Shown here: positions 9,970-60,877 of the stretch, piece by piece
Layout of the letters: the number at the start of each line of letters is the position of its first letter
Numbering within the stretch: the stretch's first letter is position 1
Assembly: GCA_977017575.1 (NCBI GenBank)
Contig: CDRNVI010000018.1
Coordinates: forward strand, 124,001-188,000
DNA: 64,000 nt
From: Paramoeba atlantica
Lineage: Eukaryota; Protista; Discosea
Direction: 5' to 3'
Notes under the pieces: generated by a model
What the model was told of the DNA's origin: nothing
The model's input: the letters and a program-made list of their open reading frames with translations, nothing else
Database searches by the model: none
Translations under genes and position numbers: made by a program

Positions 9970-12927
9970 CTAGGGTTTTCCTTCAATATGACTGTCTAGC
10001 TTACCAATATGATGATGCTGATTATCGCTGTATTTGTCGATGTTGCCTTTATATTTCTCAACCTTCTCTCTCTCAATCTCCTTCCCGCGACTGACAGCAT
10101 CCGCCGGGTTCTCATCCGTGGATATGTACGCTGCCTTGACACAAATACCTTTGTCCTCTGTCAGTCGCAGGACTTCGCGCAATTCCATTGAAACCCCCTC
10201 TGACTTGGAGATCCTCCTGTTCAGTGCAGCCTGACAGGAGGTGTTGTCAACAAAAACATCCAAGCAGGTTCCACGGGGGCAATGCGCGGAAAACTTCTCG
10301 AGGGCTAAGCGGACTGCTGCAGCTTCCGCACGGTTCACCTCATACGAGGATGACTCAGGCCACGCCTCACCCGTAATCAAAACCTCTCCGCTGTCTAAAT
10401 ACATAATCGCTCCCCATCCTTTCACCGAGGCATCGGTGTAGAGACGATGCTTGTGTGGAACAACATCGGGATGGGGAGGTGGAGACCGTGGAACATTCTC
10501 CAGCAACTCGTTTCTCCATTCTGCTAGCATGGAGCGAGTGACGACAGGGAGTGCGACCGGACGGTCACATAACTTCGGGCAACGGTTCAACAAGTTGATA
10601 CGCCGTTGCGCCACCTTCAAAGCGAAATAAAACCGCGGCATATTGAGTCGGAGAACTGCGGAGCCATAAATGAGGCGCCCCACCACCGCCTCTAGGTCAA
10701 CAAAGGAAATGTTGAAGAAAGAGTCGGCTCGCAGTTTCCTGATCACTCGCGGTCCCAGGCAGACCGTATGCGCGTTATGGTCGAACGCCACCCCATTGAA
10801 CACGTACTGTGCTACAGGGGGCTGACCCCGATCTTTAAAAAGACCGTTCGCCTTGTCGCAACGCTCGTCAATGAACTGAGCGTACGTGGTGGCCTCGGAG
10901 TGGGTTCCTGCAAACCGAACTCCGTCAACATAAACGTCGATAGCGCCTCGGTGAAACGAGTAGCGCTGAGAACAAATCGACGCCTCGCCAGCAATCGCGG
11001 CGGTAACCGTGTGCATAACCTCCGGTGCACACCTATGGCCCATCGGGAGGACGTTCATCTCAAACACGTCTCCACTGTTCGTTCTAAGGCGGAATTTGGG
11101 CCGCGCCCTCTTTGGGATACCAATCTGGTAAAATCCGCACGTGAAGTCCCGCTTCACAGCCATCGGCTCGTGCGCCTTATGAAGATACTTGGAGGGATGA
11201 TATAATGGGACCTGTGGTTCATATGATTTTAATCTATCGTTATCGTCCCTTGTCCATGAAATAAATCTTCTGCGCTGATTGCCCTCATCATCGGTCTCCA
11301 CAACCGTGAAGGGAATCATGAACTGCATCGATGGGCGCTTTCTCAACTCCTGCGCCGGGACCTTGGAGATTATGCCTGCATCCTCCAACAATCGGACGTC
11401 CGCCTCAGGCAATGAACCTTTCACACTAGGTTCGGGGTACGGGGCTTTAGGTACCCATAATAATTCATCCACTACCTTGCGAAAACGAGTGGCAGCTGAC
11501 AGACTCATCCACTCCTTAACCTGATCCAAATGGATAACAGGTATCGACTTCTTAACGTGCAAAGGTAGGTGAGCGTCGTGTGCCTTGGCTAGCCGTGAAG
11601 AGCGGCGTGCACAAACAACGGAGTGCCTGCGAAGGTAAGGCACTTCCTCGAAGCACTTTGCCACGTGCTCCGAGGTTACAGCACTGGGAGACGTGCTGAG
11701 ACTCTCTGCGTCCCGAGAGCCCTTGCCGTTGTAATACTGCTTGCGTTGTAGCGCAACAGTGATTCGACGTTGAGGTGTTTCGTGAGGTTCTGGACGTCCT
11801 CCATCCTGAGATTCCCGAGGGAGATCTCGTGGAATAGGTAAGTAATTGCACCTCTTTTTATGGAATGTGTTCCATACCCCGGACCGAGAAGTTGATTCAT
11901 CCTGTGGTCCATCTCCCGGACCGTCGTGTAACACAGGCGCTGGCCTGGTCTCAAACTTCCCACAAACTGAGCCAGTTCGGGTGTCCCCGGTCCAGTCACT
12001 ATCGCGTAGAGGTACGGCCGGTAAGGATTCAGACGGGTTGTCTTGGTCCCCCTGCCCCAATAAATGATTACCTCGTGACTGGCCACACTCACGAACTGCT
12101 CCCGCCTCAGGTCGGCGGTCTCGGTCCATCTCGCAGCGGCTTTCCAACACAGGAGGCAACACATGCTCTCCTTTACGTCGAGATGACGTCTCAGCTTCTT
12201 TAGAAGAAGTGGCGTGATTGGTAGCATCTGCCGCGTGGGTTCTAGCCCCCCCTGCGCTTGCAGGGCCTTTACGTAGAGACTCAATGGGGTACCTTCGATT
12301 CCCATGAGCTCGAACAGAGTCCTCAATGCCCCTGCGTACCCCATGCGCGTCGAGGTAGCGAGAGGCAGAGTCTCCAGGAAGAGCACCGCGTTTGCAGGAT
12401 TCGCGGTGATTCCCTTCGCCTGGCAATACTCGCGCAGGCGGAACCACAGTCGCTCCCTTGTGGCCCACGTGGCCGTTGCCCACATGGGCTGGAGCGCCTC
12501 GTTCATCTGGGTGGCGCGCGGGTCCTCGGGGGGCATTCGAAGAATCGCCCTCAGCAACTCCTGGCGGCGTCCTCCTGGAGGCTGCGCGGCGTCGGCGGTT
12601 ACGACGGCAGCGGTTTTGGCGGCGGCGGTCTTGGCGGCGGTGTAAACGGGAACGGGAAGCCGGGGTAGAGGACGGATTGGGAGGGAGACGCTTCTGCGCC
12701 TTAGACGTAACGGGGAGAGAGGGCGGGGAGGAGGAGTAGTGCCACGCACGCGTGGCCGTCTTTCGCGCTGGCGGAGAGACGGGGAGGAAACGGGGGTAAG
12801 AATATCCACCCGTCGTCGCCTGGGACGACGGGCACGAGCAGTAATTGGGGTGGGGGGCATTTCCTAGTGGAAAGCCCGTGTTGCGCCGTAACGGTTGGCG
12901 CCGCCCACCACCCCGCCGCGAAAATCC
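9970..12927 (-). CDS. Pol (RT + RNase H) of A1; frame open from the GGATTTT site (track 9970-12483)
   Basis: KRDFTCGFYQI, LPMGHRCAPE, YVDGV, LYTDAS, NRAEAAA, FVDNTS, NPADAVSR; upstream frame checked by hand and stop-free. Confidence 0.92.
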   Translation of the reverse strand, partial: GFSRRGGGRRQPLRRNTGFPLGNAPHPNYCSCPSSQATTGGYSYPRFLPVSPPARKTATRAWHYSSSPPSLPVTSKAQKRLPPNPSSTPASRSRLHRRQDRRRQNRCRRNRRRRAASRRTPPGVAEGDSSNAPRGPARHPDERGAPAHVGNGHVGHKGATVVPPARVLPGEGNHRESCKRGALPGDSASRYLDAHGVRRGIEDSVRAHGNRRYPIESLRKGPASAGGARTHAADATNHATSSKEAETSSRRKGEHVLPPVLESRCEMDRDRRPEAGAVRECGQSRGNHLLGQGDQDNPSESLPAVPLRDSDWTGDTRTGSVCGKFETRPAPVLHDGPGDGPQDESTSRSGVWNTFHKKRCNYLPIPRDLPRESQDGGRPEPHETPQRRITVALQRKQYYNGKGSRDAESLSTSPSAVTSEHVAKCFEEVPYLRRHSVVCARRSSRLAKAHDAHLPLHVKKSIPVIHLDQVKEWMSLSAATRFRKVVDELLWVPKAPYPEPSVKGSLPEADVRLLEDAGIISKVPAQELRKRPSMQFMIPFTVVETDDEGNQRRRFISWTRDDNDRLKSYEPQVPLYHPSKYLHKAHEPMAVKRDFTCGFYQIGIPKRARPKFRLRTNSGDVFEMNVLPMGHRCAPEVMHTVTAAIAGEASICSQRYSFHRGAIDVYVDGVRFAGTHSEATTYAQFIDERCDKANGLFKDRGQPPVAQYVFNGVAFDHNAHTVCLGPRVIRKLRADSFFNISFVDLEAVVGRLIYGSAVLRLNMPRFYFALKVAQRRINLLNRCPKLCDRPVALPVVTRSMLAEWRNELLENVPRSPPPHPDVVPHKHRLYTDASVKGWGAIMYLDSGEVLITGEAWPESSSYEVNRAEAAAVRLALEKFSAHCPRGTCLDVFVDNTSCQAALNRRISKSEGVSMELREVLRLTEDKGICVKAAYISTDENPADAVSRGKEIEREKVEKYKGNIDKYSDNQHHHIGKLDSHIEGKP
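11676..12860 (-). CDS. Tyrosine recombinase of A1
   Basis: AARWTE, HSIKRGA, KHLNVESLLRY. Confidence 0.93.
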   Translation of the reverse strand: MPPTPITARARRPRRRRVDILTPVSSPSLRQRERRPRVRGTTPPPRPLSPLRLRRRSVSLPIRPLPRLPVPVYTAAKTAAAKTAAVVTADAAQPPGGRRQELLRAILRMPPEDPRATQMNEALQPMWATATWATRERLWFRLREYCQAKGITANPANAVLFLETLPLATSTRMGYAGALRTLFELMGIEGTPLSLYVKALQAQGGLEPTRQMLPITPLLLKKLRRHLDVKESMCCLLCWKAAARWTETADLRREQFVSVASHEVIIYWGRGTKTTRLNPYRPYLYAIVTGPGTPELAQFVGSLRPGQRLCYTTVREMDHRMNQLLGPGYGTHSIKRGAITYLFHEISLGNLRMEDVQNLTKHLNVESLLRYNASSITTARALGTQRVSARLPVL

Positions 12928-17666: not shown

Positions 17667-20498
17667 CTATCGTGCAAAATTCCTACTGACCGGGTCTGCC
17701 GGGTTGTCTTTCGTTGAGACGTAATCGGCCTTGATGCAGACGCCCCGGTCCTTCGCCCATTGCAAAACCTTACCGAGTTGGTTTGATATTCCTCCTGATT
17801 TTGAAATTTTTCTGTTTAGCGCTGCTTGGCACGAAGTGTTATCTACCCATAATTGCAAGCACGTGCCCCGGGTGAAATGTCTCTCCAACTTCTGGAGGGA
17901 AAGTCTAACGGCTGTCGCTTCTGCCCTATTTACTTCGTATTGCCAAGAGGATTTCCATTGCCCCCCCACGATGATCACTTCGCCTGAATCGAGGTAGAGG
18001 ATGCCTCCCCATCCTTTCGCTGAGGCGTCTGTATACAAATTATGCTCCCGGGGAGCTATTTCAGGATGCGGGAGAGGTTCAACCGGTATGTTCCTAACAA
18101 GTTCATTTCGCCACTGCCGTAGCATATCTCGTATTTTGTTCGGTAGATCCACTACCTCTTCGGCCATCTCCGGCATGCGGTTTAACAAGTTTATGCGGCG
18201 TTGACATATTTTAAGGGCGAAATAGTATTTTGGAATAATAATTCCCACTACTGAGGAGCAGTACAGGAGGCGCCCCACCGTCGCCTCGAGCTCCAGAAAT
18301 GTAGTACGTGTAAATTGATCCTTCTCCAATTTTGCGACAACTTTGGGTCCCAGGTTGACCTTGTGTACGCGATGGTCGTACCTAACACCGTTAAATACGT
18401 ACTCCTTCATGGGAAGGAGTCCCGAGTCTTTAAAGCGCGCTCCTGTCTCTTGCGCGCGGTCATCAACCCATTTCTTGTACTGACAGGCCTGCTGATCTGT
18501 ACCAGCAAACCGTACACCGTCCACGTAGATATCTAATGCGCCTTGTGAAAAGGTTGATTTACAGTATCCCTTCATACCGGCGATCGTAGCCGTGACTGTG
18601 TGCATCAATTCCGGGGCGCACCGATGCCCCATCGGCAAAACGCGCATTTCATACAACACCCCCGTGTCTGAATAAAACCGAAATTTTTGACGACATTCCT
18701 GCGGAATCGAGATTTGATAAAAACCACATACTAGGTCCCTCTTCAGACCTGACTGCGCCTTAACTCTATGCAAATATTTAGATGGATGTAGTAGGGGTAC
18801 CTGGGGAACGTATTCACTCAGCCGAGCGTTGTCAGAACGCGTCCAAGAAATAAATCGTCGACGTTGCTTGCCCTCATCGTCCGTTTCAATTACCGTGAAA
18901 GGAACCAGAAATTGCATTGAGGGACGTTTGTTTTCTTCCTTTTCGGATACCGCAGAAATAATACCATGCTTAAGTAAGAGCTCGTGATCTGTATGGCTCA
19001 AACTTCCTTTCATACGAGGAGATGTTTCAGGGCAAGATGGCATGCGTAATAATTCTTTCCAAACCTGTTCGAATCTTGAGGCGGTAGCTGTAGACATCCA
19101 GCTTCGAATTTTATTCATGTCAATAGTTGGAACTCCCGGCTTGACGTGTAACGGAATATGAAAGTCCTTCGGCTTTGCTAACTTAGAACTCCGGCGTGCA
19201 CAAACTAATGTATGTCGTTTTAAGTAAGGGACTTCTTTATAACACTCTTGCATTTCTACTGGAGAAAGGGTCCGGGCAATCGCGCTGACACTCGGTGCGT
19301 GCCCAGTGCTCTTGCTGTCGTCAACTGCTGAGCATTGTATCGGAGAAGACTCTCTAAGCTCAGATGCTTTGTGAGGATTTGCACCTCCGACAAGTTGAGG
19401 TGGCCGTTGGCGACTTCCTGAAGTAGATACGTTACAGCCCCCCGTTTTATAGAGTGGGTGCCATACCCGTTTCCTAGCACCCTTCTTATTTCGTGGTCCA
19501 TCTCTCGAACTGTGGTCCTGCACAGTTTTTGGTTTTTCGGAAGGCGTCTCAAGTAATTCGCTATTTGCTCTGTCCCCGGTCCTGATATTATGGCGTGCAT
19601 GTATGGGCGGTATGGATTGAGACGTGTTGTCTTTGTGCTTCTTCCCCAATAAATCACGATTTCCTGCTCGGCAATGCTCAGAAATTGGTCGGCCTGTAGC
19701 TCGGCGACTTCCGTCCAGCGCGCTGCAGCCTTCCAGCAAATCAAGATTGCGATGGCCTGTGATGGCGTGACGCTTTTGTAAAGTTTCGTTAGCAGATACT
19801 GTGTTAGAGGTTGCATCTGTCGATGAGGTTCGAGAGCTCCCTGCGCTTGCAGCGCCTTTGAGTATAATTTCAGAGGAATTGTGTTTTCGTTCATTAGAGT
19901 GTACATCGTATGCAACCCGCGGGCGTACGCTAATCTTGTCGACATTGCCAATTTTTGTGCATCGAGGAATAAAACGGCGTTGAGAGCGGAAGGCTGTATC
20001 ATTTTTACTCGACAAAAGTCCTCCATTCGACTCCATATTGCCTCTCTCGACCTCCACGTAGTGTGAGCCCACATGGGACGAATTGCGTCTCGTAACACCG
20101 GAGCGTTCGCGTCCTCGGTCTGGATCCCTAACATTTTGTTTGTCAACATAACGCGTCTCACTCTTGCTGTCATCGGCAACTCGGCGCGGTTCGAACTTCT
20201 CTTCACACATATATGATCCGTCAAGCTTGCGTTTTGACTTGTCTGTGTCACGAGTAACGGCCTCCTGGCCCTCTTCTGATTTCCGTCGGTGCTCACATAT
20301 CGAGCACCGTTCCATACAAACTTTATGCGCGAAGCGCACAAGTATCCTGGCAATTTCGCTCGCTGCCTCTTCAAGGCTCGAGCACGAGTAGGAATTTTTG
20401 GGGTGGGGGACAATCCCTATTGGATCGTCCGTCTTTCGCCGCGACGGAACGTTGTCTGCGTCTGTGCAGCGCCACTCGCCACCCCCCGGGAGAAAACC
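17667..20498 (-). CDS. Pol (RT + RNase H) of B2 (track 17667-20339; frame open to 20549)
   Basis: RDLVCGFYQI, YVDGV, LYTDAS, WVDNTS, NPADPVSR. Confidence 0.92.
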   Translation of the reverse strand, partial: GFLPGGGEWRCTDADNVPSRRKTDDPIGIVPHPKNSYSCSSLEEAASEIARILVRFAHKVCMERCSICEHRRKSEEGQEAVTRDTDKSKRKLDGSYMCEEKFEPRRVADDSKSETRYVDKQNVRDPDRGRERSGVTRRNSSHVGSHYVEVERGNMESNGGLLSSKNDTAFRSQRRFIPRCTKIGNVDKISVRPRVAYDVHSNERKHNSSEIILKGAASAGSSRTSSTDATSNTVSANETLQKRHAITGHRNLDLLEGCSALDGSRRATGRPISEHCRAGNRDLLGKKHKDNTSQSIPPIHARHNIRTGDRANSELLETPSEKPKTVQDHSSRDGPRNKKGARKRVWHPLYKTGGCNVSTSGSRQRPPQLVGGANPHKASELRESSPIQCSAVDDSKSTGHAPSVSAIARTLSPVEMQECYKEVPYLKRHTLVCARRSSKLAKPKDFHIPLHVKPGVPTIDMNKIRSWMSTATASRFEQVWKELLRMPSCPETSPRMKGSLSHTDHELLLKHGIISAVSEKEENKRPSMQFLVPFTVIETDDEGKQRRRFISWTRSDNARLSEYVPQVPLLHPSKYLHRVKAQSGLKRDLVCGFYQISIPQECRQKFRFYSDTGVLYEMRVLPMGHRCAPELMHTVTATIAGMKGYCKSTFSQGALDIYVDGVRFAGTDQQACQYKKWVDDRAQETGARFKDSGLLPMKEYVFNGVRYDHRVHKVNLGPKVVAKLEKDQFTRTTFLELEATVGRLLYCSSVVGIIIPKYYFALKICQRRINLLNRMPEMAEEVVDLPNKIRDMLRQWRNELVRNIPVEPLPHPEIAPREHNLYTDASAKGWGGILYLDSGEVIIVGGQWKSSWQYEVNRAEATAVRLSLQKLERHFTRGTCLQLWVDNTSCQAALNRKISKSGGISNQLGKVLQWAKDRGVCIKADYVSTKDNPADPVSRNFAR
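19256..20413 (-). CDS. Tyrosine recombinase of B2
   Basis: AARWTE, HSIKRGA, KHLSLESLLRY. Confidence 0.93.
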   Translation of the reverse strand: MSPTPKIPTRARALKRQRAKLPGYLCASRIKFVWNGARYVSTDGNQKRARRPLLVTQTSQNASLTDHICVKRSSNRAELPMTARVRRVMLTNKMLGIQTEDANAPVLRDAIRPMWAHTTWRSREAIWSRMEDFCRVKMIQPSALNAVLFLDAQKLAMSTRLAYARGLHTMYTLMNENTIPLKLYSKALQAQGALEPHRQMQPLTQYLLTKLYKSVTPSQAIAILICWKAAARWTEVAELQADQFLSIAEQEIVIYWGRSTKTTRLNPYRPYMHAIISGPGTEQIANYLRRLPKNQKLCRTTVREMDHEIRRVLGNGYGTHSIKRGAVTYLLQEVANGHLNLSEVQILTKHLSLESLLRYNAQQLTTARALGTHRVSARLPGPFLQ

Positions 20499-23925: not shown

Positions 23926-23954
23926 AAAAGAAAGAAAAGCAAAGTAGTAAAAAT

Positions 23955-23969
23955 CAACAAGGTACAGAA
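23955..23969 (-). other. SL relic, 3' 15 nt
   Basis: TTCTGTACCTTGTTG, 29 nt upstream of the CRE-1 ATG. Confidence 0.85.
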
Positions 23970-23971
23970 GA

Positions 23972-26002: not shown

Positions 26003-28826
26003 TCAATGCTTTTTCTCTTCACACATTCTGCTATATGGATCTGCAGGATTTTCTTTTGATGCAATATATTCTGCCTGTACTGCAATTCCTTGACGCTTCA
26101 AATATTTCAACAAACCATACAACTCCGAAGTAATGCCATCAGATCCTGACACTTTCCTATTGATCGCTGCTAAACAGGATGTATTGTCAACAAATAAATC
26201 TACGCATGTATCTCGCTGAAAGTGATGCCCGTACTTCTCAAACGCCAAACGTACTGCCCGAGCTTCGGCCCGATTCACTTCGTACTTGAAACCCTCCGGC
26301 CAGGAGGCTCCGGTACATAAAACTTTCCCATAGTCGAGGTAAAGCACCGCCCCCCACCCGGTGGACGACGCATCGGTAAATAGAACGTGCTGATGTGGTA
26401 CTGTATCAGGATGTCGGACCGGGTCCACTGGAGAACAATAGATCAAGGAATCGCGCCACTCGGTCAACTTCACTCGCACTCGTAATGGTAAAGGCACGAC
26501 AGTATCCAATAGACAAGGATCGCGATTTAAATGATTGATTCGTCGTCGGACAATTTTCAAGAATAGATGATATTGGGGAATCGGTATGCCCATGATTGCC
26601 GAAGCAAAAATGAGCCTCCCAACACCGGCCTCGAGCCCAGAGTATGTGGTATGCATGTAGTTATCATTCTGAAGTCTTCGCGTTATCTTGGGTCCCAATG
26701 CAACTTTCCCTGATCGGTGGTGATAATTGACTCCATTGAATGTGTAGTTCTGCAAAGGTGGCACCCCAACCTCCTTAAAACGGGCGTTAACGTGCTGCGC
26801 CCGTCGATCTATAAACGCGGCATATTCCTGTGTATTTTTGTCACTAGAAGCGTAACGAATGCCGTCGATATACACATCCAGACCATTGTGGGCAAACGCC
26901 GATTTCTTATTACAGTAAGCTGGATCTCCCGCTATTGTCGCGGTTAACGAGTGCATCAACTCAGGGGCACACCGGTGTCCCATCGGCATCACATTCATTT
27001 CATATACTTGCCCACTGCGGTCCAAAAATCTGAACTTCGCCCTACTTTCGGATGGAATCGCGACCTGAAAAAAAACCGCATGCCAGATCACGCTTTACCG
27101 CCGAGTCCTGTCGGGCTCGATGGAGATAATAGGCTGCATGTTTTACCGGTACTTGTGGCTCATAAACCTCCTTAATCCGCGCGTTGTCATCCCGGGTCCA
27201 TGCTATAAACCGCCGGCGTTCTGTCTCGTCGTCAGCAGGCTCGACAACCGTGAATGGTATCACCCATTCCATCGTTGGGCGACGCTGTGCTTCCTCTGTG
27301 TTGACGTGTGACACAAATCCTGCGTCCACCAGCTGGGTTATATCCTTGTCGTGCAATAATGATTTACACGCCGGTGTTTTACTCGGAGTGTTTGGTAACC
27401 GAGTTAAAATTTTCCATGTCTCCTCGAAGCGCTCACGTGCTTTTTGGTTCATTAACAGTTTAAGTCGCTCGACCTCCATCTGTGGAATATTTAGCTTCAC
27501 ATGCAAGGGCAACTTCCAATCCCCCTCCTGTGCCACCTTAGAGGTCCTCCTCGATCTCGTTATTGTGTGCTTTACCTTCTCGTGCGGTATATCTTCCAAA
27601 AACTTGCTAAAAATAACCTCGGGGCTCACAGTATCTGTAGTTTTGACGTGGCCTTCTGGGTACCAAGCGCCAAGGCGGTAGTGACTGGGTCCGCATTGTA
27701 CCGCAGGAGGGACTCCAGGGATTGGTGCTTTGCGAGATGTTGCACCTCGTCGAGTCGGATTGTCCCGTTGGCTACCTCTGTGAAAAGGTGTGTGATTGCG
27801 CCCCTCTTCGCCGAATGCGTGCCGTACCCCGCCCCTAACCGCTCTCGAACGCGGGCGTCGACCTCCGTCACCGTTGATCTGGACATTGGCTGGTGCTGTC
27901 CCAACTGACTGATGTACGCGTGAAGGGTAGCGGTTCCGGGGCCCTCGATCACCGTGTACATGGAGGGTCGGTATGGGTTGAACCTGGAAGTCTTTGTTTT
28001 TCTCCCCCACCAAATCACTATTCTTAACGGCGTTAATTCGCGAAATTGTTCCTTCGTCAAACTTGCAGTCTCGGTCCACCGGCTGGCTGCTTTCCAACAA
28101 AGCATCAAGGTATGTCTTTCGCTGCATGGGAGATGGTGCCATAACTGGTTCAGTAACGTGGGTGTCAAAGGAGCCATCTGGCGTACTGGCTCCGTGGCCC
28201 CTTCTGCCATCAGTGATTTTACATAAAATTTTAGAGGATTCGTTTCCAGGCCTGCGAGGCTTAATATAGAAGCGAGGCTGCGTGCGTACGTGAGCTTGCC
28301 CTGTACTCTGATGTTCATCGTCGCCACAAAAGTTACTGCATGTATCGCGGTAATTTCGATTGCCTTCCAATTGCAAAAGGCGGTTAGTCTTTCCCACAAC
28401 CTCGCCCTGCTTTTCCAGGTTGCGTTGCTCCACATCTCGGACATCCCATCTAGTGCTACACGGACCTCTTCCGTCACGTGAGTAATTCCCATTAATAACT
28501 TCATCAACTTCATCCTTACTGGCGTAGTATCCACACTTAACATTCCTCCGTACAAACTCCCAGATCTTATCAATCTCCCTTTCAAGTCGCCTGCACTTGG
28601 TACATTCACCGTCTGCTTTTCCGTTTGTAACCTTCCCTCCATCCTCCTTTTCTTTGCAACTTGCATATTCGACACACTTTTCCCCTTGAATATAATAACA
28701 CTGGCCGTTAGGGTGGGGCTTTTTCATAAGCTCTTGCTGCTCCCGGCAGGGCCAGCCACCCGCGAACGAAAATCCCGCTTTGGACAGTTTTTCCATACAT
28801 GATCGGGTGAACGGCACCCAAAACAC
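26003..28826 (-). pseudogene. Pol of family C with one frameshift in an A8 run (27068-27075)
   Basis: KRDLACGFF|QVAIP broken by one extra base; YIDGI, LFTDAS, FVDNTS, NPADPYSR. A homopolymer sequencing error is possible. Confidence 0.85.
27626..28723 (-). CDS. Tyrosine recombinase of family C (track 27626-28675)
   Basis: ASRWTE, HSAKRGA, KHQSLESLLRY. Confidence 0.9.
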   Translation of the reverse strand, partial: KSPTLTASVIIFKGKSVSNMQVAKKRRMEGRLQTEKQTVNVPSAGDLKGRLIRSGSLYGGMLSVDTTPVRMKLMKLLMGITHVTEEVRVALDGMSEMWSNATWKSRARLWERLTAFCNWKAIEITAIHAVTFVATMNIRVQGKLTYARSLASILSLAGLETNPLKFYVKSLMAEGATEPVRQMAPLTPTLLNQLWHHLPCSERHTLMLCWKAASRWTETASLTKEQFRELTPLRIVIWWGRKTKTSRFNPYRPSMYTVIEGPGTATLHAYISQLGQHQPMSRSTVTEVDARVRERLGAGYGTHSAKRGAITHLFTEVANGTIRLDEVQHLAKHQSLESLLRYNADPVTTALALGTQKATSKLQIL

Positions 28827-31759: not shown

Positions 31760-32421
31760 GTTTTTTTTTTTTTTTTTTTTTTTTTTTGCAAATAATTGGG
31801 GGGAATAGTATTGAGTCTAACTTTTTATGTATGGAGTCCAACTTTTCCACAATTTCCACACTTACGGCCCTTCACTTTCCCTTACTCCCCATACTTTCCA
31901 CACCTACTCCTCTTAGCCCTCTCGTACTTCCCTTCCCTCACTCCCTACCCCACTCACCGATCCGCATGCACCCAGGCCCGTATGGTCCTGCACCTCCGCT
32001 CCCACCCCGTTAGCAGTAATAAATACTTTTGGTTGCCGTACGAGGGTGGGAGACGTGGAGGCCACGAAACACAAAGACGTCGTCACGCCGAGGGAGAAGA
32101 GCGCGGAGAGAGACACGGGGCGACTGACGCAAGGGCGAGAGGAGGCGAAGCACGGGACCATCTGCCAGGAACTCTGCCCCCACCCCGTGAGCAAGTATTG
32201 TATACTTTTGGCTGCTGACACGGGGGTGGTGGACGCGAGAGAGAAACACAACAGGGGGGCAAGCGCACTGCGGAGGGAGGGTGAGGTGGGGGGATGCGGC
32301 GCAGGGGGGTGATGGGACGAGACGGGGAAGGGGGATGCCGACAAAAAGGAGTGTATTTGAGGGGGGTGCCCTCCCATGGTCTGGAAGATGGTGTATGGAA
32401 GAAAAGGGGAAATAATTCAAC

Positions 32422-32457: not shown

Positions 32458-33122
32458 TTTTTGGGGGGGGGGGAGTAGTATTGATTCTAATGTTTATATC
32501 TACGTTTCGAACTTTCCACCACTTAAAACCTTTCACCCTACTTCCTTCCTTCCCCTACTTCCGTCCCCTCACCACACTTACTTCCCTTCCCCCACTTACG
32601 CCCTACCGACTGACGTGTCCCTACTGACCGGCTCGTCCGCACTGTGGCCCATGTGGTCCAGGACCTCCGCTCCCACCCCGTTAGCAGTATAAGATACTTT
32701 GAGTTGCCGTACGAGGGTGGGAGACTTGGAGGAGACGAAACGCATAGCCGCCGTCACGCCGAGGGCAAAAAGCGGGAAGAGGGACATGGCGGGACGGACG
32801 CGGGGACAAGGAGAAACGGCGCCCGAGCCCATCGGTCTGGACCTCTGCCCCCACCCCGTGAGCAAGTATACAATACTTTGGGCTGCTGGCACGGGGGTGG
32901 GGGACGCAAGAGAGGAAAACAACAGAACGACAAGCGCGCTTACACGGAAGGTCGAGGTGGGGGGATACGGCGCAGGGGGATGATGGGACGAGAGAGGGAG
33001 GGGGGATGCCGACAAGAAAGTGTGTATTTGAGGGGGGTGCCCTCCCATGGTCTGGAAGATGGTGTAGGGAAGAAAAAGGAAATAATTCAACAAGGTACAG
33101 AAACTGTATCTTTATCGTTAAA
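32427..33122 (-). mobile_element. SL-capped short retroposon, copy b
   Basis: 35 nt of SL at 33088-33122; hairpins at 32848-32903 and 32670-32723; A-rich tail. Confidence 0.85.
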
Positions 33123-33189: not shown

Positions 33190-36126
33190 TTAGGGCTTTC
33201 TCTGAATATGACTGCCTACCTTATTAATGTCTCTCTCGATCTTACCTTCGTATCTCTCCACCTTCTCCATCTCAATCTCCTTCCCGCGACTGACAGCATC
33301 CGCCGGGTTCTCATCCGTGGATATATACGCTGCCTTGACACAAATACCTTTCTCCTCTGTCAGTCGCAGGACTTCGCGCAATTCCATTGAAACCCCCTCT
33401 GACTTGGAGATCCTCCTGTTCAGTGCAGCCTGACAGGAGGTGTTGTCAACAAAAACATCCAAGCAGGTTCCACGGGGGCAATGCGCGGAAAACTTCTCGA
33501 GGGCTAAGCGGACTGCTGCAGCTTCCGCACGATTTACCTCATACGAGGAGGACTCAGGCCACGCCTCTCCCGTAATCAAAACCTCTCCGCTGTCTAAATA
33601 CATAATCGCTCCCCACCCTTTCACCGAGGCATCGGTGTAGAGACGATGCTTGTGTGGAACAACATCGGGATGGGGAGGTGGAGACCGTGGAACATTCTCC
33701 AACAACTCGTTTCTCCACTCTGCTAGCATGGAGCGAGTGACGACAGGGAGTGCGACCGGACGGTCACATAACTTCGGGCAACGGTTCAACAAGTTGATAC
33801 GCCGTTGCGCCACCTTCAAAGCGAAATAAAATCGCGGCATATTGAGTCGGAGAACTGCGGAGCCATAAATGAGGCGCCCCACCACCGCCTCTAGGTCAAC
33901 AAAGGAAATGTTGAAGAAAGAGTCGGCTCGCAGTTTCCTGATCACTCGCGGCCCCAGGCAGACCGTATGCGCGTTATGGTCGAACGCCACCCCATTGAAC
34001 ACGTACTGTGCTACAGGGGGCTGACCCCGATCTTTGAAAAGACCGTTCGCTTTGTCGCAACGCTCGTCAATGAACTGAGCGTACGTGGTGGCCTCGGAGT
34101 CGGTTCCTGCAAACCGAACTCCGTCAACATAAACGTCGATAGCGCCTCGGTGAAACGAGTAGCGCTGAGAACAAATCGACGCCTCGCCAGCAATCGCGGC
34201 GGTAACCGTGTGCATAACCTCCGGTGCACACCTATGGCCCATCGGGAGGACGTTCATCTCATACACGTCTCCACTGGTCGTTCTAAGGCGGAATTTGGGC
34301 CGCGCCCTCTTCGGGATACCAATCTGGTAAAACCCGCATGTGAAGTCCCGCTTCACAGCCATCGGCTCGTGCGCCTTATGAAGATACTTGGAGGGATGAT
34401 ATAATGGGACCTTTGGTTCATATGATTTTAATCTATCGTTATCGTCCCTTGTCCATGAAATAAATCTTCTGCGCTGATTGCCCTCATCATCGGTCTCCAC
34501 AACCGTGAAGGGAATCATGAACTGCATCGATGGGCGCTTTCTCAACTCCTGCGCCGGGACCTTAGAGATTATGCCTGCGTCCTCCAACAATCGGACGTCC
34601 GCCTCAGGCAATGAACCTTTCACACTAGGTTCGGGGTACGGGGCTTTAGGTACCCATAATAATTCATCCACTACCTTGCGAAAACGAGTGGCAGCTGACA
34701 GACTCATCCACTCCTTAACCTGATCCAAATGGATAACAGGTATCGACTTCTTAACGTGCAAAGGTAGGTGTGCGTCGTGTGCCTTGGCTAGCCGTGAAGA
34801 GCGGCGTGCACAAACAACGGAGTGCCTGCGAAGGTAAGGCACTTCCTCGAAGCACTTTGCCACGTGCTCCGAGGTTACAGCACTGGGAGACGTGCTGAGA
34901 CTCTCTGCGTCCCGAGAGCCCTTGCCGTTGTAATACTGCTTGCGTTGTAGCGCAACAGTGATTCGACGTTGAGGTGTTTCGTGAGGTTCTGGACGTCCTC
35001 CATCCTGAGATTCCCGAGGGAGATCTCGTGGAATAGGTAAGTAATTGCACCTCTTTTTATGGAATGTGTTCCATACCCCGGACCGAGAAGTTGATTCATC
35101 CTGTGGTCCATCTCCCGGACCGTCGTGTAACACAGGCGCTGGCCTGGTCTCAAACTTCCCACAAACTGAGCCAGTTCGGGTGTCCCCGGTCCAGTCACTA
35201 TCGCGTAGAGGTACGGCCGGTAAGGATTCAGACGGGTTGTCTTGGTCCCCCTGCCCCAATAGATGATTACCTCGTGACTGGCCACACTCACGAACTGCTC
35301 CCGCCTCAGGTCGGCGGTCTCGGTCCATCTCGCAGCGGCTTTCCAACACAGGAGGCAACACATGCTCTCCTTTACGTCGAGATGACGTCTCAGCTTCTTT
35401 AGAAGAAGTGGCGTGATTGGTAGCATCTGCCGCGTGGGTTCTAGCCCCCCCTGCGCCTGCAGGGCCTTTACGTAGAGACTCAATGGGGTACCTTCGATTC
35501 CCATGAGCTCGAACAGAGTCCTCAATGCCCCTGCGTACCCCATGCGCGTCGAGGTAGCGAGAGGCAGAGTCTCCAGGAAGAGCACCGCGTTTGCAGGATT
35601 CGCGGTGATTCCCTTCGCCTGGCAATACTCGCGCAGGCGGAACCACAGTCGCTCCCTTGTGGCCCACGTGGCCGTTGCCCACATGGGCTGGAGCGCCTCG
35701 CCCAACTGGGTGGCGCGAGGATCGTCGGCGGGCATCCTCAGAATGGCCTCGAGCAGCTGCTTGCGGTGTTTTCCTGGCGGCTGTAGAGCGTCGGCGGTTA
35801 CGACGGCGGCGGTTTGGGCGGCGGCGGTTTGGGCGGCGGCGTAAACGGGAACAGGGAACCGAGGTAGAGGTCGGGCCGGGAGCGAGACACTTCTGCGCTT
35901 CAGACGTAACGGGGAGAGAGGGCGGGGAGGAGGAGTAGTGCCACGCACGCGTGGCCGTCTTTCGCGCTGGCGGAGGGACGGAGAGGAAGCAGGGGTAAGA
36001 ATATCCACCCGTCGTCGCCTGGGACGACGGGCACGAGCAGTAGTTGGGGTGGGGGGCATTTCCTAGTGGAAAGCCCGTGTTGCGCCGTAACGGTTGGCGC
36101 CGCCCACCACCCCGCCGCGAAAATCC
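33190..36126 (-). CDS. Pol (RT + RNase H) of A2 (track 33190-35682; frame open from the slippery site)
   Basis: Same motifs as A1; upstream frame checked stop-free. Confidence 0.92.
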   Translation of the reverse strand, partial: GFSRRGGGRRQPLRRNTGFPLGNAPHPNYCSCPSSQATTGGYSYPCFLSVPPPARKTATRAWHYSSSPPSLPVTSEAQKCLAPGPTSTSVPCSRLRRRPNRRRPNRRRRNRRRSTAARKTPQAAARGHSEDARRRSSRHPVGRGAPAHVGNGHVGHKGATVVPPARVLPGEGNHRESCKRGALPGDSASRYLDAHGVRRGIEDSVRAHGNRRYPIESLRKGPAGAGGARTHAADATNHATSSKEAETSSRRKGEHVLPPVLESRCEMDRDRRPEAGAVRECGQSRGNHLLGQGDQDNPSESLPAVPLRDSDWTGDTRTGSVCGKFETRPAPVLHDGPGDGPQDESTSRSGVWNTFHKKRCNYLPIPRDLPRESQDGGRPEPHETPQRRITVALQRKQYYNGKGSRDAESLSTSPSAVTSEHVAKCFEEVPYLRRHSVVCARRSSRLAKAHDAHLPLHVKKSIPVIHLDQVKEWMSLSAATRFRKVVDELLWVPKAPYPEPSVKGSLPEADVRLLEDAGIISKVPAQELRKRPSMQFMIPFTVVETDDEGNQRRRFISWTRDDNDRLKSYEPKVPLYHPSKYLHKAHEPMAVKRDFTCGFYQIGIPKRARPKFRLRTTSGDVYEMNVLPMGHRCAPEVMHTVTAAIAGEASICSQRYSFHRGAIDVYVDGVRFAGTDSEATTYAQFIDERCDKANGLFKDRGQPPVAQYVFNGVAFDHNAHTVCLGPRVIRKLRADSFFNISFVDLEAVVGRLIYGSAVLRLNMPRFYFALKVAQRRINLLNRCPKLCDRPVALPVVTRSMLAEWRNELLENVPRSPPPHPDVVPHKHRLYTDASVKGWGAIMYLDSGEVLITGEAWPESSSYEVNRAEAAAVRLALEKFSAHCPRGTCLDVFVDNTSCQAALNRRISKSEGVSMELREVLRLTEEKGICVKAAYISTDENPADAVSRGKEIEMEKVERYEGKIERDINKVGSHIQRKP
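34875..36059 (-). CDS. Tyrosine recombinase of A2
   Basis: AARWTE, HSIKRGA, KHLNVESLLRY. Confidence 0.93.
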   Translation of the reverse strand: MPPTPTTARARRPRRRRVDILTPASSPSLRQRERRPRVRGTTPPPRPLSPLRLKRRSVSLPARPLPRFPVPVYAAAQTAAAQTAAVVTADALQPPGKHRKQLLEAILRMPADDPRATQLGEALQPMWATATWATRERLWFRLREYCQAKGITANPANAVLFLETLPLATSTRMGYAGALRTLFELMGIEGTPLSLYVKALQAQGGLEPTRQMLPITPLLLKKLRRHLDVKESMCCLLCWKAAARWTETADLRREQFVSVASHEVIIYWGRGTKTTRLNPYRPYLYAIVTGPGTPELAQFVGSLRPGQRLCYTTVREMDHRMNQLLGPGYGTHSIKRGAITYLFHEISLGNLRMEDVQNLTKHLNVESLLRYNASSITTARALGTQRVSARLPVL

Positions 36127-37460
36127 TGTTGCGGGGTGCGCTGGGTACGGAACTGCCCCCCCTGCTGTTGGGACGATTGGGGGCAGTTCGATCGTAGGTG
36201 GCCTGGCTGATGGCAGCCAAAACAGAAAGGTCCTTGGCTGCGTCGTCGGGGAGCACGCGTAGCGGTTCGGCCCCTCAGTTGCTCGTCAACCACAAGCTGA
36301 CCGTAGCGGTCCTGAGGGTCGTCGTCACGGTGCAAACGCTGTTGCACACGTTCGACAGCAACGCCCGCCGCAGCCCAATAATGGTTGCGAAGCTCTTCGA
36401 TGATGAGAAGGGCTACGGCGAGGTTGTGCTTCTCTAGCCAACCCTCTGTGTTGCGCGCAGCGTAAACCCATTCAGTCAACATTTTGAACAGGCGCTCACG
36501 CTGCGGCGGAGGGTTGAAGCGTACCCCAAGCTGCGGAGCTTCGCGCAGCTCACGGATGAGTTCACGTGGCTTGAACAAATCATCCGTGTCGATCCACGGT
36601 TGCCAAGTAACCGGATCGTAGGGGGAGAAGCCTTTCGGGTCCGTAATACGGACGCGTTCAAACGTGGGGATCAGATCTTCAACTGGTTTCCCACCCGGCA
36701 TCTGCGCCCGAACATGGGCCAGTTCCAAAGAGTGGTAGTTGATCTCGGGATGGGGAAAACGGTAGGCAGTGTTCTTGTCCCCATCCCACTCGGCGAACAA
36801 CTCAGTTGAGTTAGGGTCCTTTGGATGCGTCATATGCACCAACCCTATAACCGTCTGCCGTAGGCCATCCCGGGGAAGAGACCATACAGCTTCAGCGGTG
36901 ACCTCGTAGTCTTTGCGCAGAAGCTCAATCACTTTCGTGATGAATTCTTCTTTGCTAGATTGTGTCATGATCCCACGCGCATCACAGCGTGAACGCTGAG
37001 GCATCCCGACGTGGTCAAGGTCGAGGGCCTCGTAACGGCGCGGCGAGCGAGAAGCCTCAACCTGGTCGGGGTTGAGGGTTCCTCTACGTCGAATATGGGG
37101 CTCCGGAGCCTCCAGCGGAAATGGATACGGGCTAGGGAGGGAGCTCGCCGGCAAACTGGGGAGGTTAGAAGGGAGAGGGCTAGGCGGTTCGCGGGCGGGG
37201 CTGAGTGCTCTTCCTGAAGGGCGTACCTTGCGCCGCGCCGGTCCAGGGGTAGGGGGAACAGGAGGAGGTCGCGCGGATACCTGCGGAGCCGGTTGCGTGG
37301 GGAGAGGAGGGAGAGGGGGGCGCACGGGAGGACATGAAAGAGACTGGCGTTTGGAAGCAAAAGAGGAGGTTTCAACGGGTGTTGGCGCCCGGTCACGCTT
37401 TGGAGAGCGATCACGGTCCTGGCTCGGCTCCTGAGGAGCCCGCAAACGTTGGGATCTCAT
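36063..37460 (-). CDS. Intact Gag of A2 (465 aa)
   Basis: Pro-rich N-terminus, beta-rich domain, helical region, CFGCHQPGHLRSNC. Confidence 0.93.
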   Translation of the reverse strand: MRSQRLRAPQEPSQDRDRSPKRDRAPTPVETSSFASKRQSLSCPPVRPPLPPLPTQPAPQVSARPPPVPPTPGPARRKVRPSGRALSPAREPPSPLPSNLPSLPASSLPSPYPFPLEAPEPHIRRRGTLNPDQVEASRSPRRYEALDLDHVGMPQRSRCDARGIMTQSSKEEFITKVIELLRKDYEVTAEAVWSLPRDGLRQTVIGLVHMTHPKDPNSTELFAEWDGDKNTAYRFPHPEINYHSLELAHVRAQMPGGKPVEDLIPTFERVRITDPKGFSPYDPVTWQPWIDTDDLFKPRELIRELREAPQLGVRFNPPPQRERLFKMLTEWVYAARNTEGWLEKHNLAVALLIIEELRNHYWAAAGVAVERVQQRLHRDDDPQDRYGQLVVDEQLRGRTATRAPRRRSQGPFCFGCHQPGHLRSNCPQSSQQQGGQFRTQRTPQQDFRGGVVGGANRYGATRAFH

Positions 37461-43035: not shown

Positions 43036-43834
43036 GAGTTGCTTTGCCAAGGTTTCCTGCCCGCGCCGTCTGTAGGGCGTGCCTGATCGAACGCCTGTCA
43101 ATTTCTAACTCCGCCCGTTGTTCCGCACTCAAGTTGCTAGCTTCCAAGTTTTCTCGGTCGTTGCGAACATGAGCTACTTTTTGGTTTCGTCGAATTGCTT
43201 GACGTACTGTCGCAAGTGAATCGCGAGGCGCATTCAAAAATTTGTGCCATATCGCCTCTTTTTCTGAGTCAAGCTCCGCCGCTGCATATCCCCGAATTAT
43301 CGCACGGAAAATCGCCACAACATGAACCGCGAAAGATGGGTCTATTTGAGCCATAGGCGGGAGCGGATCAAGGTCACTCTGACCGTCTTCGCATGAGATG
43401 TGCTCCGCTTGTTCCTCCAAATTTTGTGTCGGCATCTCGATTTTGAATAACTTAGTGGCTTGGAGGTTACAGATTCTGATTTTATTGGACGGTGGAAGAT
43501 AAAGAAAACCGCATGGACCATCGTGACCTAGAGCCGGCTCGTATGAAATCTTGACTTTCACGGTTGATTTTCGCACGGTCCTGCCTACAACGATGCCGTT
43601 TGACTTGTAGTTTGTAGTGTTCTGTCGGAAGCCCCATTCGATCACACATTCTGTACCCTTGCCCCACTTGGAAACGATGTTGTACACTTGGTCGGGCGAT
43701 TTGTTGCCGGCCTGTGTCATTAGCTCCTGTACTCGATCTTGCGTCGATCCATCGTCGTCCAGACACATTGTATCACTGGTCTCGCTTTCTGTTGCGGACA
43801 TTTCTTTGGCTGTGAGTTTCAACTCTATCTTCAT
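43036..43834 (-). pseudogene. CRE-5 N-terminal fragment
   Basis: KWGKGTECVIEWGF...KISYEP...YLPPSNKI; WHKFLNAPRD; cut at ARAGNLGKAT. Confidence 0.8.
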
Positions 43835-44146
43835 TTTTTTTTTTTTTTTTTTTGGTGCGCGTCTAAAGCGGCAAAAACATTTTTTTTTTTTTTTTTGCTG
43901 TGAGAAGTGGACATGACAATAATCGTGAAGTATAAAAAGCATATCAAGCACTACTACTTTCAAGCCTTCAACATTAGAAGGACGCACGATCTGTTTGCTG
44001 CAACTCGCAGCCTTTGACTACTCACCTTCACACTTCTTTCCAACTTCCCTAATACTGCCGCTCTGCACGTCTTCTTGGAGAGCCTCCATTTTTATCCTCT
44101 CAGTCTTAAAAAGCGTAAGGAGAAATTGAACCTGGTGGATCGACAG

Positions 44147-44456
44147 CCCGAGCTGAAAGGGAGTTTTGGGCGCTCTAGAGTTATCGCTCCATCTGGGAAC
44201 ATTTTTCACACGCACGCAATAGACGTTTATCGTAGCAGGGGGCTTCAAGAGCTTCGGTTGCGTGAGGGAGGGATGCAGAGACATTTGATGAATCTCAGCA
44301 GGGCCCGAGCTGAAAAAGATTTTTGGCGCTCTAGAGACCCACTGATTCCTCATCCGTACAACTGAACCCTTCGATTCCTGTGTGAACAAGCTTGCCCGGC
44401 ACTTTCGAAGAATACCAGCAAAACCCGAGCTGAAAAAGATTTTTGGCGCTCGAGAG
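44147..44456. repeat. Three spaced 33-bp self-complementary repeats
   Basis: cccgagctgaaaaagatttttggcgctc(t/g)agag at 44304 and 44424; a diverged copy at 44147. Confidence 0.8.
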
Positions 44457-45539: not shown

Positions 45540-48500
45540 TTAGGGTTTTCTCTGAATATGACTGTCTACATCACTAATGTCTCTCTCGATCTTACCTTCA
45601 TATCTCTTGACCTTCTCCATCTCAATATCCTTCCCGCGACTGACAGCATCCGCCGGGTTCTCATCCGTGGATATATACGCTGCCTTGACACAAATACCTT
45701 TCTCCTCTGTCAGTCGCAGGACTTCGCGCAATTCCATTGAAACCCCCTCTGACTTGGAGATCCTCCTGTTCAGTGCAGCCTGACAGGAGGTGTTATCAAC
45801 AAAAACATCCAAGCAGGTTCCACGGGGGCAATGCGCGGAAAACTTCTCGAGGGCTAAGCGGACTGCTGCAGCTTCCGCACGATTCACCTCATACGAGGAT
45901 GACTCAGGCCACGCCTCTCCCGTAATCAAAACCTCTCCGCTGTCTAAATACATAATCGCTCCCCACCCTTTCACCGAGGCATCGGTGTAGAGACGATGCT
46001 TGTGTGGAACAACATCGGGATGGGGAGGTGGAGACCGTGGAACATTCTCCAACAACTCGTTTCTCCACTCTGCTAGCATGGAGCGAGTGACGACAGGGAG
46101 TGCGACCGGACGGTCACATAACTTCGGGCAACGGTTCAACAAGTTGATACGCCGTTGCGCCACCTTCAAAGCGAAATAAAACCGCGGCATATTGAGTCGG
46201 AGAACTGCGGAGCCATAAATGAGGCGCCCCACCACCGCCTCTAGGTCAACAAAGGAAATGTTGAAGAAAGAGTCGGCTCGCAGTTTCCTGATCACTCGCG
46301 GTCCCAGGCAGACCGTATGCGCGTTATGGTCGAACGCCACCCCATTGAAGACGTACCGTGCTACAGGGGGCTGACCCCGATCTTTGAAAAGACCGTTCGC
46401 CTTGTCGCAACGCTCGTCAATGAACTGAGCGTACGTGGTGGCCTCGGAGTCGGTTCCTGCAAACCGAACTCCGTCAACATAAACGTCGATAGCGCCTCGG
46501 TGAAACGAGTAGCGCTGAGAACAAATCGACGCCTCGCCAGCAATCGCGGCGGTAACCGTGTGCATAACCTCCGGTGCACACCTATGGCCCATCGGGAGGA
46601 CGTTCATCTCATACACGTCTCCACTGTTCGTTCTAAGGCGGAATTTGGGCCGCGCCCTCTTCGGGATACCAATCTGGTAAAACCCGCATGTGAAGTCCCG
46701 CTTCACAGCCATCGGCTCGTGCGCCTTATGAAGATACTTGGAGGGATGATATAATGGGACCTTTGGTTCATATGATTTTAATCTATCGTTATCGTCCCTT
46801 GTCCATGAAATAAATCTTCTGCGCTGATTGCCCTCATCATCGGTCTCCACAACCGTGAAGGGAATCATGAACTGCACCGATGGGCGCTTTCTCAACTCCT
46901 GCGCCGGGACCTTAGAGATTATGCCTGCGTCCTCCAACAATCGGACGTCCGCCTCAGGCAACGAACCTTTCACACTAGGTTCGGGGTACGGGGCTTTAGG
47001 TACCCATAATAGTTCATCCACTACCTTGCGAAAACGAGTGGCAGCTGACATACTCATCCACTCCTTAACCTGATCCAAATGGATAACAGGTATCGACTTC
47101 TTAACGTGCAAAGGTAGGTGAGCGTCGTGTGCCTTGGCTAGCCGTGAAGAGCGGCGTGCACAAACAACGGAGTGCCTGCGAAGGTAAGGCACTTCCTCGA
47201 AGCACTTTGCCACGTGCTCCGAGGTTACAGCACTGGGAGACGTGCTGAGACTCTCTGCGTCCCGAGAGCCCTTGCCGTTGTAATACTGCTTGCGTTGTAG
47301 CGCAGCAGTGATTCGACGTTGAGGTGTTTCGTGAGGTTCTGGACGTCCTCCATCCTGAGATTCCCGAGGGAGATCTCGTGAAACAGGCAAGTTATTGCAC
47401 CTCTTTTTATGGAATGCGTTCCATACCCCGGACCGAGAAGCTGATTCATCCTGTGGTCCATCTCCCGGACCGTCGTGTAACACAGGCGTTGGCCTGGTCT
47501 CAAACTTCCCACAAACTGAGCCAGTTCGGGTGTCCCCGGTCCAGTCACTATCGCGTAGAGGTACGGCCGGTAAGGATTCAGACGGGTTGTCTTGGTCCCC
47601 CTGCCCCAATAAATGACTACCTCGTGACTGGCCACACTCACAAACTGCTCCCGCCTCAGGTCGGCGGTCTCGGTCCATCTCGCAGCGGCTTTCCAACACA
47701 GGAGGCAACACATGCTCTCCTTTACGTCGAGGTGACGTCTCAGCTTCTTTAGAAGAAGTGGCGTGATTGGTAGCATCTGCCGCGTGGGTTCTAGCCCCCC
47801 CTGCGCCTGCAGGGCCTTTACGTAGAGACTCAATGGGGTACCTTCGATTCCCATGAGCTCGAACAGAGTCCTCAATGCCCCTGCGTACCCCATGCGCGTC
47901 GAGGTAGCGAGAGGCAGAGTCTCTAGGAAGAGCACCGCGTTTGCAGGATTCGCGGTGATTCCCTTCGCCTGGCAATACTCGCGCAGGCGGAACCACAATC
48001 GCTCCCTTGTGGCCCACGTGGCCGTCGCCCACATGGGCTGGAGCGCCTCGTTCATCTGGGTGGCGCGCGGGTCCTCGGGGGGCATTCGAAGAATCGCCCT
48101 CAGCAACTCCTGGCGGCGTCTCCCTGGCGGCTGTGCGGCGTCGGCGGTTACGACGGCGGCGGTTTTGGCGGCGGCCGTCTTGGCGGCGGCGTAAACGGGA
48201 ACGGGAAGCCGGGGTAGAGGACGGATTGGGAGGGAGACGCTTCTGCGCCTTAGACGTAACGGGGAGAGAGGGCGGGGAGGAGGAGTAGTACCACGCACGC
48301 GTGGCCGTCTTTCGCGCTGGCGGAGAGACGGGGAGGAAACAGGGGTAAGAATATCCACCCGTCGTCGCCTGGGACGACGGGCACGAGCAGTAATTGGGGT
48401 GGGGGGCATTTCCTAGTGGAAAGCCCGTGTTGCGCCGTAACGGTTGGCGCCGCCCACCACCCCGCCTCGAAAATCCTGGGCTGGGGTTCGTTGGCTGCGG

Positions 48501-60710: not shown

Positions 60711-60877
60711 ATTTCGTCTGTTTTAGAAAATAGGATAAACTAAACTCTTCAATTCTTGCAAAAATGTAACTCATTAAATATTAGACTCATTCCATGTGCT
60801 ATATGTTCTTCTATTTTCTTCTAATGGGCAAACTAGATGAGGGCTAAGTATGGTTTGCTTTGAAAATACGGAATTCC

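Follow-up and report, generated by a model that had tools for sequence, protein, structure and literature searches.

Introduction

The VIPER and TATE retrotransposons of kinetoplastids are the described systems closest to the elements treated here. They are about 4.5 kb long, carry the gene order gag, tyrosine recombinase (YR), reverse transcriptase/ribonuclease H (RT/RH), and have a CCHC knuckle in gag and an extensive overlap of YR with RT/RH (Lorenzi 2006, PMC6681497, PMC12278014); the overlapping YR and RT/RH open reading frames (ORFs) are also documented in PMC5146736. Published descriptions of VIPER/TATE give ORF maps and 'alternative start sites' and no recoding mechanism. No proposal of ribosomal frameshifting was found in the literature on VIPER, TATE and DIRS1, in which the YR/RT overlap is described, and a review (PMC5009743) makes no mention of YR or DIRS elements. 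How the overlapping ORFs of VIPER/TATE-type and other YR retrotransposons are expressed has so far been left open, with alternative starts invoked in the literature; in polycistronic, trans-splicing hosts the full-length RNA must still serve as template and mRNA. Six YR retrotransposon copies with this layout lie on the minus strand of a 64,000-nt stretch of DNA from Paramoeba atlantica (assembly GCA_977017575.1, contig CDRNVI010000018.1, positions 124,001 to 188,000; hereafter the window, in whose own numbering all positions are given). They are regarded as VIPER-like (VIPER/TATE) elements of the order DIRS, likened to that group by gene order and ORF overlap, and may be VIPER/TATE in the strict sense. 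At the gag end of copy A2 stands an 81-nt cassette (36046-36126) which, judged from the sequence, is quite probably a -1 programmed ribosomal frameshift signal producing Gag-Pol across the recombinase gene.

Organization of the elements and comparative set

Family A comprises three copies (A1, A2 and A3) that are mutually ~95% identical and have ~4.5 kb of homology in common (37647-33123). Copies B1, B2 and C are 45-57% identical to family A in YR and pol, and 28-56% in gag. The gag ORF of A2 (36063..37460, minus strand, as are all element features below) encodes 465 aa with a CCHC knuckle near the C-terminus (CFGCHQPGHLRSNC, type CX2CX4HX4C), from the end of which 20 codons lead to the Asp-Phe of the heptamer described below. 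Only one UAG divides gag from the YR ORF (34875..36059), which is in frame with gag and open from the codon that follows this UAG. The pol (RT/RH) frame is -1 relative to gag; it is stop-free from 36285 to 33192 (1031 codons) and spans all of YR, so that the two ORFs overlap extensively. The trans-frame Pol of A2 (33190..36126) would extend in this frame from the heptamer across the part overprinted on YR and across RT/RH to the stop. The gene order gag-like, YR, RT/RH, with YR upstream of RT, was read from tblastn maps. RT/RH domain matches are present in the pol of the elements and the YR catalytic columns R...K...HxxR...H...Y are invariant, while Pfam gave no recognition of gag or YR.

A phmmer search against 1.84 billion representatives returned 1754 relatives. 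The nearest named ones are euglenozoan: Papus ankaliazontas (Prokinetoplastina), with 41% and 34% identity, and Diplonema papillatum, with 30%. Comparisons were made on the families of the window, on families D and E (contigs from the same assembly), on L003-L009 (contigs of distant relatives, 30-37% pol identity) and on L012-L021, ten metagenome loci picked by a YR peptide pattern alone, blind to junction and signal. Locus L010 was excluded for having no recognisable gag/YR junction, L002 (element F) is 5'-truncated, and the Diplonema papillatum locus L011 is uninformative, being 5'-truncated by a trinucleotide microsatellite and without gag or YR. The preliminary description of the window had placed pol at -1 relative to gag in its six copies; this was borne out and extends to 22/22 families with a recognisable junction, in all of which gag and YR share one frame with a single stop between them. 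The 4-nt gag/pol 'start/stop overlaps' noted in L003-L009 were considered as termination-reinitiation sites and rejected, as they are TTGA/GTGA picks of a prokaryotic gene caller and not AUGA.

The gag-end cassette

The heptamer G_GAU_UUU of A2 is located at 36120..36126 in the zero-frame register of gag. The heptamer GGATTTT is found also in A1 (12921..12927), A3 (48470..48476), B1 (4519..4525) and C (28769..28775), and its counterpart in B2 is GGTTTTC (20492..20498). The first base of the heptamer is position 3 of a gag codon in all six copies, i.e., the X_XXY_YYZ register, and both the positions and the register agree with the preliminary description. The minus strand of the window contains GGATTTT eight times, five of these at the homologous gag-end position. 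Heptamers of the type G_GNW_WWN were then counted in the gag register over the last 81 nt before the gag stop. They are present in 19/22 families, 22-79 nt before the stop. The background elsewhere in gag is 0.0030 per in-register position, equal to 0.074 expected per search interval (binomial P = 4e-19). The enrichment is specific to the register, with 19 families (20 occurrences) in register versus 4 and 1 occurrences out of register.

The heptamers differ among families. G_GAU_UUU is present in A, B1, C, D, L003, L004 and L020, G_GAU_UUC in L005, G_GUU_UUC in B2, G_GCU_UUU in L016, G_GGU_UUU in E, L015 and L019, and G_GGA_AAC in L006, L007, L013, L014, L017 and L018/L021. Experiments have established shifting at G_GA- and G_GU-type P sites, at G_GGU_UUU and at G_GGA_AAC (PMC5009743). 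The switch between U-type and A-type heptamers alters the residues in both frames (D-F/G-F to G-N/G-K) and retains slipperiness, which speaks for a slippery function rather than for a peptide motif.

A spacer of 6 nt (CGCGGC, 36114..36119) separates the A2 heptamer from a stem, S1, formed by the 5' arm GGGGUGG (36107..36113) and the 3' arm CCACCCC (36046..36052). The 3' arm begins 10 nt after the gag stop, and S1 encloses this UAG (36063-36065). The pairing of GGG(G)UGG with CCACCC(C) past the gag stop, claimed in the preliminary description, is thus present, with spacers of 6-7 nt: B1 and B2 have the same arms and a 6-nt spacer, and C has GGGUGG/CCACCC and a 7-nt spacer. Two hairpins lie within the S1 loop of A2, H1 (GCGCC...GGCGC, 36082..36100) and H2 (GGGCUUUCC/GGAAA-U-GCCC, 36054..36076), the latter holding the gag stop in its loop; H2-equivalent hairpins of differing sequence are found in other families. 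Alignments of the cassette made with MAFFT put the 3' arms of L004, L005 and the short-loop families out of register, and the helices of each family were therefore scored separately against shuffles. In 21/21 families tested (those with a heptamer) a helix of 5 bp or more starts 3-7 nt past the heptamer, and its 3' arm begins 4-22 nt after the gag stop in 20/21; the exception is L006, whose best-scoring helix overlaps the stop and whose homologous stem, GUUGG/CCAAC, fits the interval instead. S1 covaries, with at least 14 distinct arm sequences, examples being GGGGUGG/CCACCCC, GGGGGA/UCCCCC, CGGGACG/CGUCCCG, GGGGAGG/CCUCCCC, GGCCGGCAAG/UUUGCCGGCC and UCGGGCGGCACG/CGUGCCGCCUGG. By the shuffle tests the Fisher P is 2e-17; it is 3e-14 when each helix type is represented by a single family, and 6e-8 when 13 families are tested with dinucleotide shuffles over a wider search. 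Within the cassette the three A copies vary only in the spacer and the post-S1 linker, and the read data show one cassette variant, at 36043, in the same linker.

A second helix, S2, crosses S1 in most families and is likely to give the cassette a pseudoknot topology, less securely established than S1 itself; the preliminary description had missed this probable pseudoknot-type fold. The candidate arms in A2 are GGGCGGCG (36098..36105, 5' arm) and CGUCGUCC (36022..36029, 3' arm). In the clade of the window S2 begins 0-1 nt after the S1 5' arm (Fisher P 4e-5), its arms being CGAGUGG/CUACUCG in B, ACGAGCGG/UCGCUCGU in E and (A)CUGGCC/GGCCAG(U) in C and D. In families with a UGA stop, the stop-region UGACUG pairs with a CAGUCA located past an A-rich linker (Fisher P 6e-6). 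Locus L016 has the make-up of a textbook H-type pseudoknot, with an S1 of 12 bp, an L1 of 5 nt, an S2 of 8 bp, an L2 of 0 nt and an A-rich L3 of 8 nt. Nested folding chooses S1 in some families and S2 in others, as is expected if both can form.

According to the proposed mechanism, the full-length element RNA would be translated in the gag frame up to G_GAU_UUU, where GAU would occupy the P site and UUU the A site. The stem GGGGUGG/CCACCCC, 6 nt downstream and probably set within a larger fold of internal hairpins and the crossing second helix, would resist being unwound at the mRNA entry channel, and some of the ribosomes would slip back by one base onto GGA_UUU. From there these ribosomes would stay in the -1 frame, crossing the ~400 codons that overprint the recombinase and then RT/RH, to yield a Gag-linker-RT/RH protein with the predicted family A junction ...QQDF|SRRGGG.... 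Ribosomes that do not slip would terminate at the gag UAG, 61 nt past the heptamer's first base, some of them probably reading through to make Gag-YR. The slippage and its efficiency, like the pseudoknot geometry and the readthrough, are predictions from these features; the checkable expectations for a -1 programmed frameshift at the level of sequence hold, also in relatives outside the window.

The pol frame across the recombinase gene

The -1 frame over YR contains no stop in 365-395 codons in any of six families (A2, B1, B2, C, D and E), close to the overprint of ~350-390 residues given in the preliminary description. Synonymous-codon shuffles of YR have 10-12 stops in this frame, and none of 2000 shuffles was free of stops (0/2000). 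Read in the +1 frame, these YR codons contain 19-36 stops, and the -1 frame within gag has about one stop per 18 codons. The openness of the pol frame is thus selected. Across families the pol frame opens 25-448 nt before the gag stop, and in the window families together with D and E it opens 48-198 nt before the heptamer (51-198 nt within the window itself). The pol frame of L007 and of L017 starts exactly at the heptamer and overlaps gag by 25 nt. Also, a Papus ankaliazontas transcript ORF runs upstream through the homologous -1-frame 'EEGFSKGG', which is counted in favor of frameshifting.

Compared between families, YR has a synonymous-site identity of 0.325, which does not exceed that of RT (0.338). 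This rules out the overprinted part of Pol as a conserved domain; it is selected for openness only, with no constraint on its amino acids. The phmmer alignments that reach into the overprint likewise reflect similarity imposed by YR and no constraint on Pol. A stretch of Pol that is unconstrained and yet open is what is expected if ribosomes merely pass through it.

The explanation that survives best beside frameshifting, though an improbable one, is that Pol is translated by itself, starting at an AUG of its own on an mRNA that is trans-spliced separately or initiated internally, and that the heptamer and stem are kept for dual-coding peptides, RNA packaging or dimerisation. In B1, B2, D and E a pol-frame Met does occur 59-72 codons past the heptamer, with another near the YR end, 'alternative start sites' are given for VIPER ORF3 in the literature (PMC5146736), and the -1-frame 'GF[SR]' and 0-frame 'DF' motifs are conserved. 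However, no pol-frame AUG is conserved among families, and the pol frame is free of stops for hundreds of codons before any Met (in the young family A the first Met is 266 codons past the heptamer), which would be needless for an internal start. The pol frame moreover opens at or just before the heptamer, the UUU-type to AAA-type switch alters both of the peptides in question, and the stem covaries.

The gag stop and probable readthrough into YR

The gag stop of A2 (UAG, 36063..36065, followed by G) is a candidate readthrough site; the homologous stops are at 4444-4446, 12864-12866, 20417-20419, 28724-28726 and 48413-48415. Among the 22 families the gag stop is UGA in 17, UAG in 5 and UAA in none, whereas 7/37 of the YR and pol stops are UAA (P ~0.01 for the absence of UAA at gag). 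C follows UGA in 12/17 families and G follows UAG in 5/5. In 22/22 families the YR frame is open immediately past the gag stop, and its first AUG lies 1-99 codons downstream. Summed over the families these AUG-less codons number 1003, all stop-free, for which the chance is 2e-25 at the third-frame stop rate of 0.055 per codon. The gag stop, on this evidence, is probably read through to yield Gag-YR, with the caveat that S2 pairing also explains the UGACUG context. It looks programmed for readthrough into YR, which the preliminary description had missed.

These same features, a gag stop that is never UAA, in a UGA-C or UAG-G context, and a 0 frame open from the stop, would also suit the proposal that structure and stop context serve Gag-YR readthrough only, Pol being reached by a second event such as a frameshift near the YR 3' end (giving Gag-YR-Pol). 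This is less probable still than an independent start of pol. A late shift would not require a pol frame open over the whole of YR, and the upstream in-register heptamer would be left unexplained. The geometry is also adverse: with the stop in the A site, the S1 5' arm, being upstream of it, would be covered by the ribosome or already melted. The weakest explanation, that G-rich, C-rich and T runs of a doubly coding region mimic the cassette by chance, can draw on individual shuffle p values of only 0.07-0.27 in some families and on some z-scores near zero, but is effectively refuted on statistical grounds by the combined helix test across independent helix types (P = 3e-14), the heptamer enrichment (P = 4e-19) and the register specificity (19 families with 20 occurrences versus 4 and 1), ten of the loci having been retrieved without reference to the signal.

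Several observations weigh against frameshifting at the gag end. Three of the 22 families are without G_GNW_WWN: L008 has only G_GGG_GGA, L009 has A_AAA_AAU and L012 has nothing convincing. Re-pairing in the P site is imperfect at G_GAU_UUU. Two frames are coding across the heptamer and the stem arms (D-F in the 0 frame and G-F in the -1 frame, PTP/PHP at the 3' arm), and some of the conservation there could be due to the encoded proteins. For single cassettes the minimum-free-energy z-scores are modest (-2.7 to +0.9, mean ~-1.2, 11/13 negative), two S1 registers are possible in family A, and S2 is weak in family A alone (p ~0.1). The search intervals for the helix statistics were set post hoc, and the families share ancestry. 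An unconstrained linker of ~400 residues within Pol is unusual. The sole RNA-labelled run of the organism contained no part of the element, and all that the DNA runs show is a high-copy family.

Comparison with known recoding signals

The cassette resembles the gag-pol -1 signals of retroviruses and long terminal repeat (LTR) elements, such as Rous sarcoma virus (RSV), mouse mammary tumour virus (MMTV) and human immunodeficiency virus 1 (HIV-1), in having Pol in the -1 frame, a short gag/pol overlap and an X_XXY_YYZ heptamer. The retroviral and LTR signals have a stem or pseudoknot 5-8 nt after the heptamer, and here likewise a stem lies downstream, enclosing internal hairpins as in RSV. The logic of obtaining a minority Gag-Pol product from genomic RNA would also be shared. 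It differs in that the shifted ribosome would cross an entire recombinase gene in another frame, ~400 codons, before RT. Protease and integrase are absent here, the gag stop lies inside the stimulator, and the host would be a euglenozoan.

Identical heptamers are used by plant viruses (PMC5009743): G_GAU_UUU, including its imperfect G_GA P site, by the dianthovirus red clover necrotic mosaic virus (RCNMV) and by an umbravirus, pea enation mosaic virus 2 (PEMV2), and G_GGU_UUU by the luteovirus barley yellow dwarf virus (BYDV); G_GGA_AAC is a further match. In RCNMV, PEMV2 and BYDV a bulged stem-loop acts with a kilobase-distant partner, whereas here the partner arms are local, within ~110 nt. 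With readthrough of the murine leukaemia virus (MuLV) type (UAG-G and a downstream structure) and of the alphavirus type (UGA-C) the elements share a leaky gag-end stop followed by an in-frame enzyme ORF without an AUG of its own. Unlike in those systems, the predicted readthrough product is a recombinase and not Pol, and the cassette would be shared with a -1 frameshift.

Two kinetoplastid elements were inspected by eye. In the first 10 kb of the Leishmania braziliensis TATE locus (LbrM.11 528344-545558; PMC6681497 additional file 11) a gag-like ORF ends in ...RRKFFRGGEAQDGSKN-UAA. A G_UUU_UUC stands at the position homologous to the heptamer, directly preceded by a -1-frame UAA, A_AAA_AAC abuts the stop, and the -1 frame is open for at least 95 codons. 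This portion of the locus suggests that true TATE shares the same frameshift strategy. In a part of the Bodo saltans VIPER sequence (CYKH01000216.1; PMC6681497 additional file 10) an in-register G_GGA_AAC lies 31 nt before UGA (...LAKGNPQRNNQKR*), and the sequence downstream looks non-coding.

Other features of the window

The window is a nest of retroelements. Fragments of A-family gag at 5315-6589 and 23971-24882, 94-96% identical to A2, adjoin the gag regions of B1 and B2, suggesting that YR elements have inserted into each other in nested or tandem fashion. Copy A2 has on its 3' side a direct repeat of 112 nt (32300-32411 with 32971-33082, 91% identity) and a 457-nt direct-repeat pair (33096-32646 versus 32426-31975, 84% identity), which possibly form part of the split direct repeats of the element. 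Of the split arrangement A1 ... B1-A2-B2 (letters here denoting repeats), only direct repeats on the 3' side were found, and a 5'/3' A repeat was not identified. In two DNA runs, contigs link 36128 with 36241, omitting 112 nt of the gag 3' region directly upstream of the heptamer, and represent either a deletion variant or an assembly chimera. RVT_1-type (non-LTR) RT ORFs, unrelated to the YR elements, are located at 40597-43101, 52734-56534, 59421-60743, 60878-62035 and 13796-14932; an ORF trio at 40597-44821 was set aside as an unrelated RVT_1 non-LTR element. A 455-aa ORF on the minus strand (22891-24258) has a weak LsmAD-domain match (E = 0.007). A long tandem array with a 17-nt period occupies 62062-63989 and has AAAAAAC on the minus strand every 17 nt.

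Implications

Frameshifting at the end of gag accounts for an RT/RH ORF that invariably stretches back across the entire recombinase gene, and would supply a Gag-Pol annotation rule for YR elements. To our knowledge, the signal would be the first -1 frameshift signal for elements of the order DIRS and for nuclear-encoded RNAs of Euglenozoa, none having been found in the literature searched or in the review PMC5009743. The overprint of ~400 codons, selected for openness alone, would be an unusually clean case of a frame kept as a passage for ribosomes, and the cassette is small enough for direct reporter tests. More tentatively, and at somewhat less than even chances, a single cassette of ~110 nt may carry two recodings, a -1 shift at G_GAU_UUU giving Gag-Pol and readthrough of the enclosed UAG/UGA giving Gag-YR, as an ancestral strategy of VIPER-like YR retrotransposons across Euglenozoa. 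If this is true, Pol and YR would share the same 1.2 kb in two frames, and one unspliced RNA would give Gag, Gag-recombinase and Gag-polymerase in set ratios.

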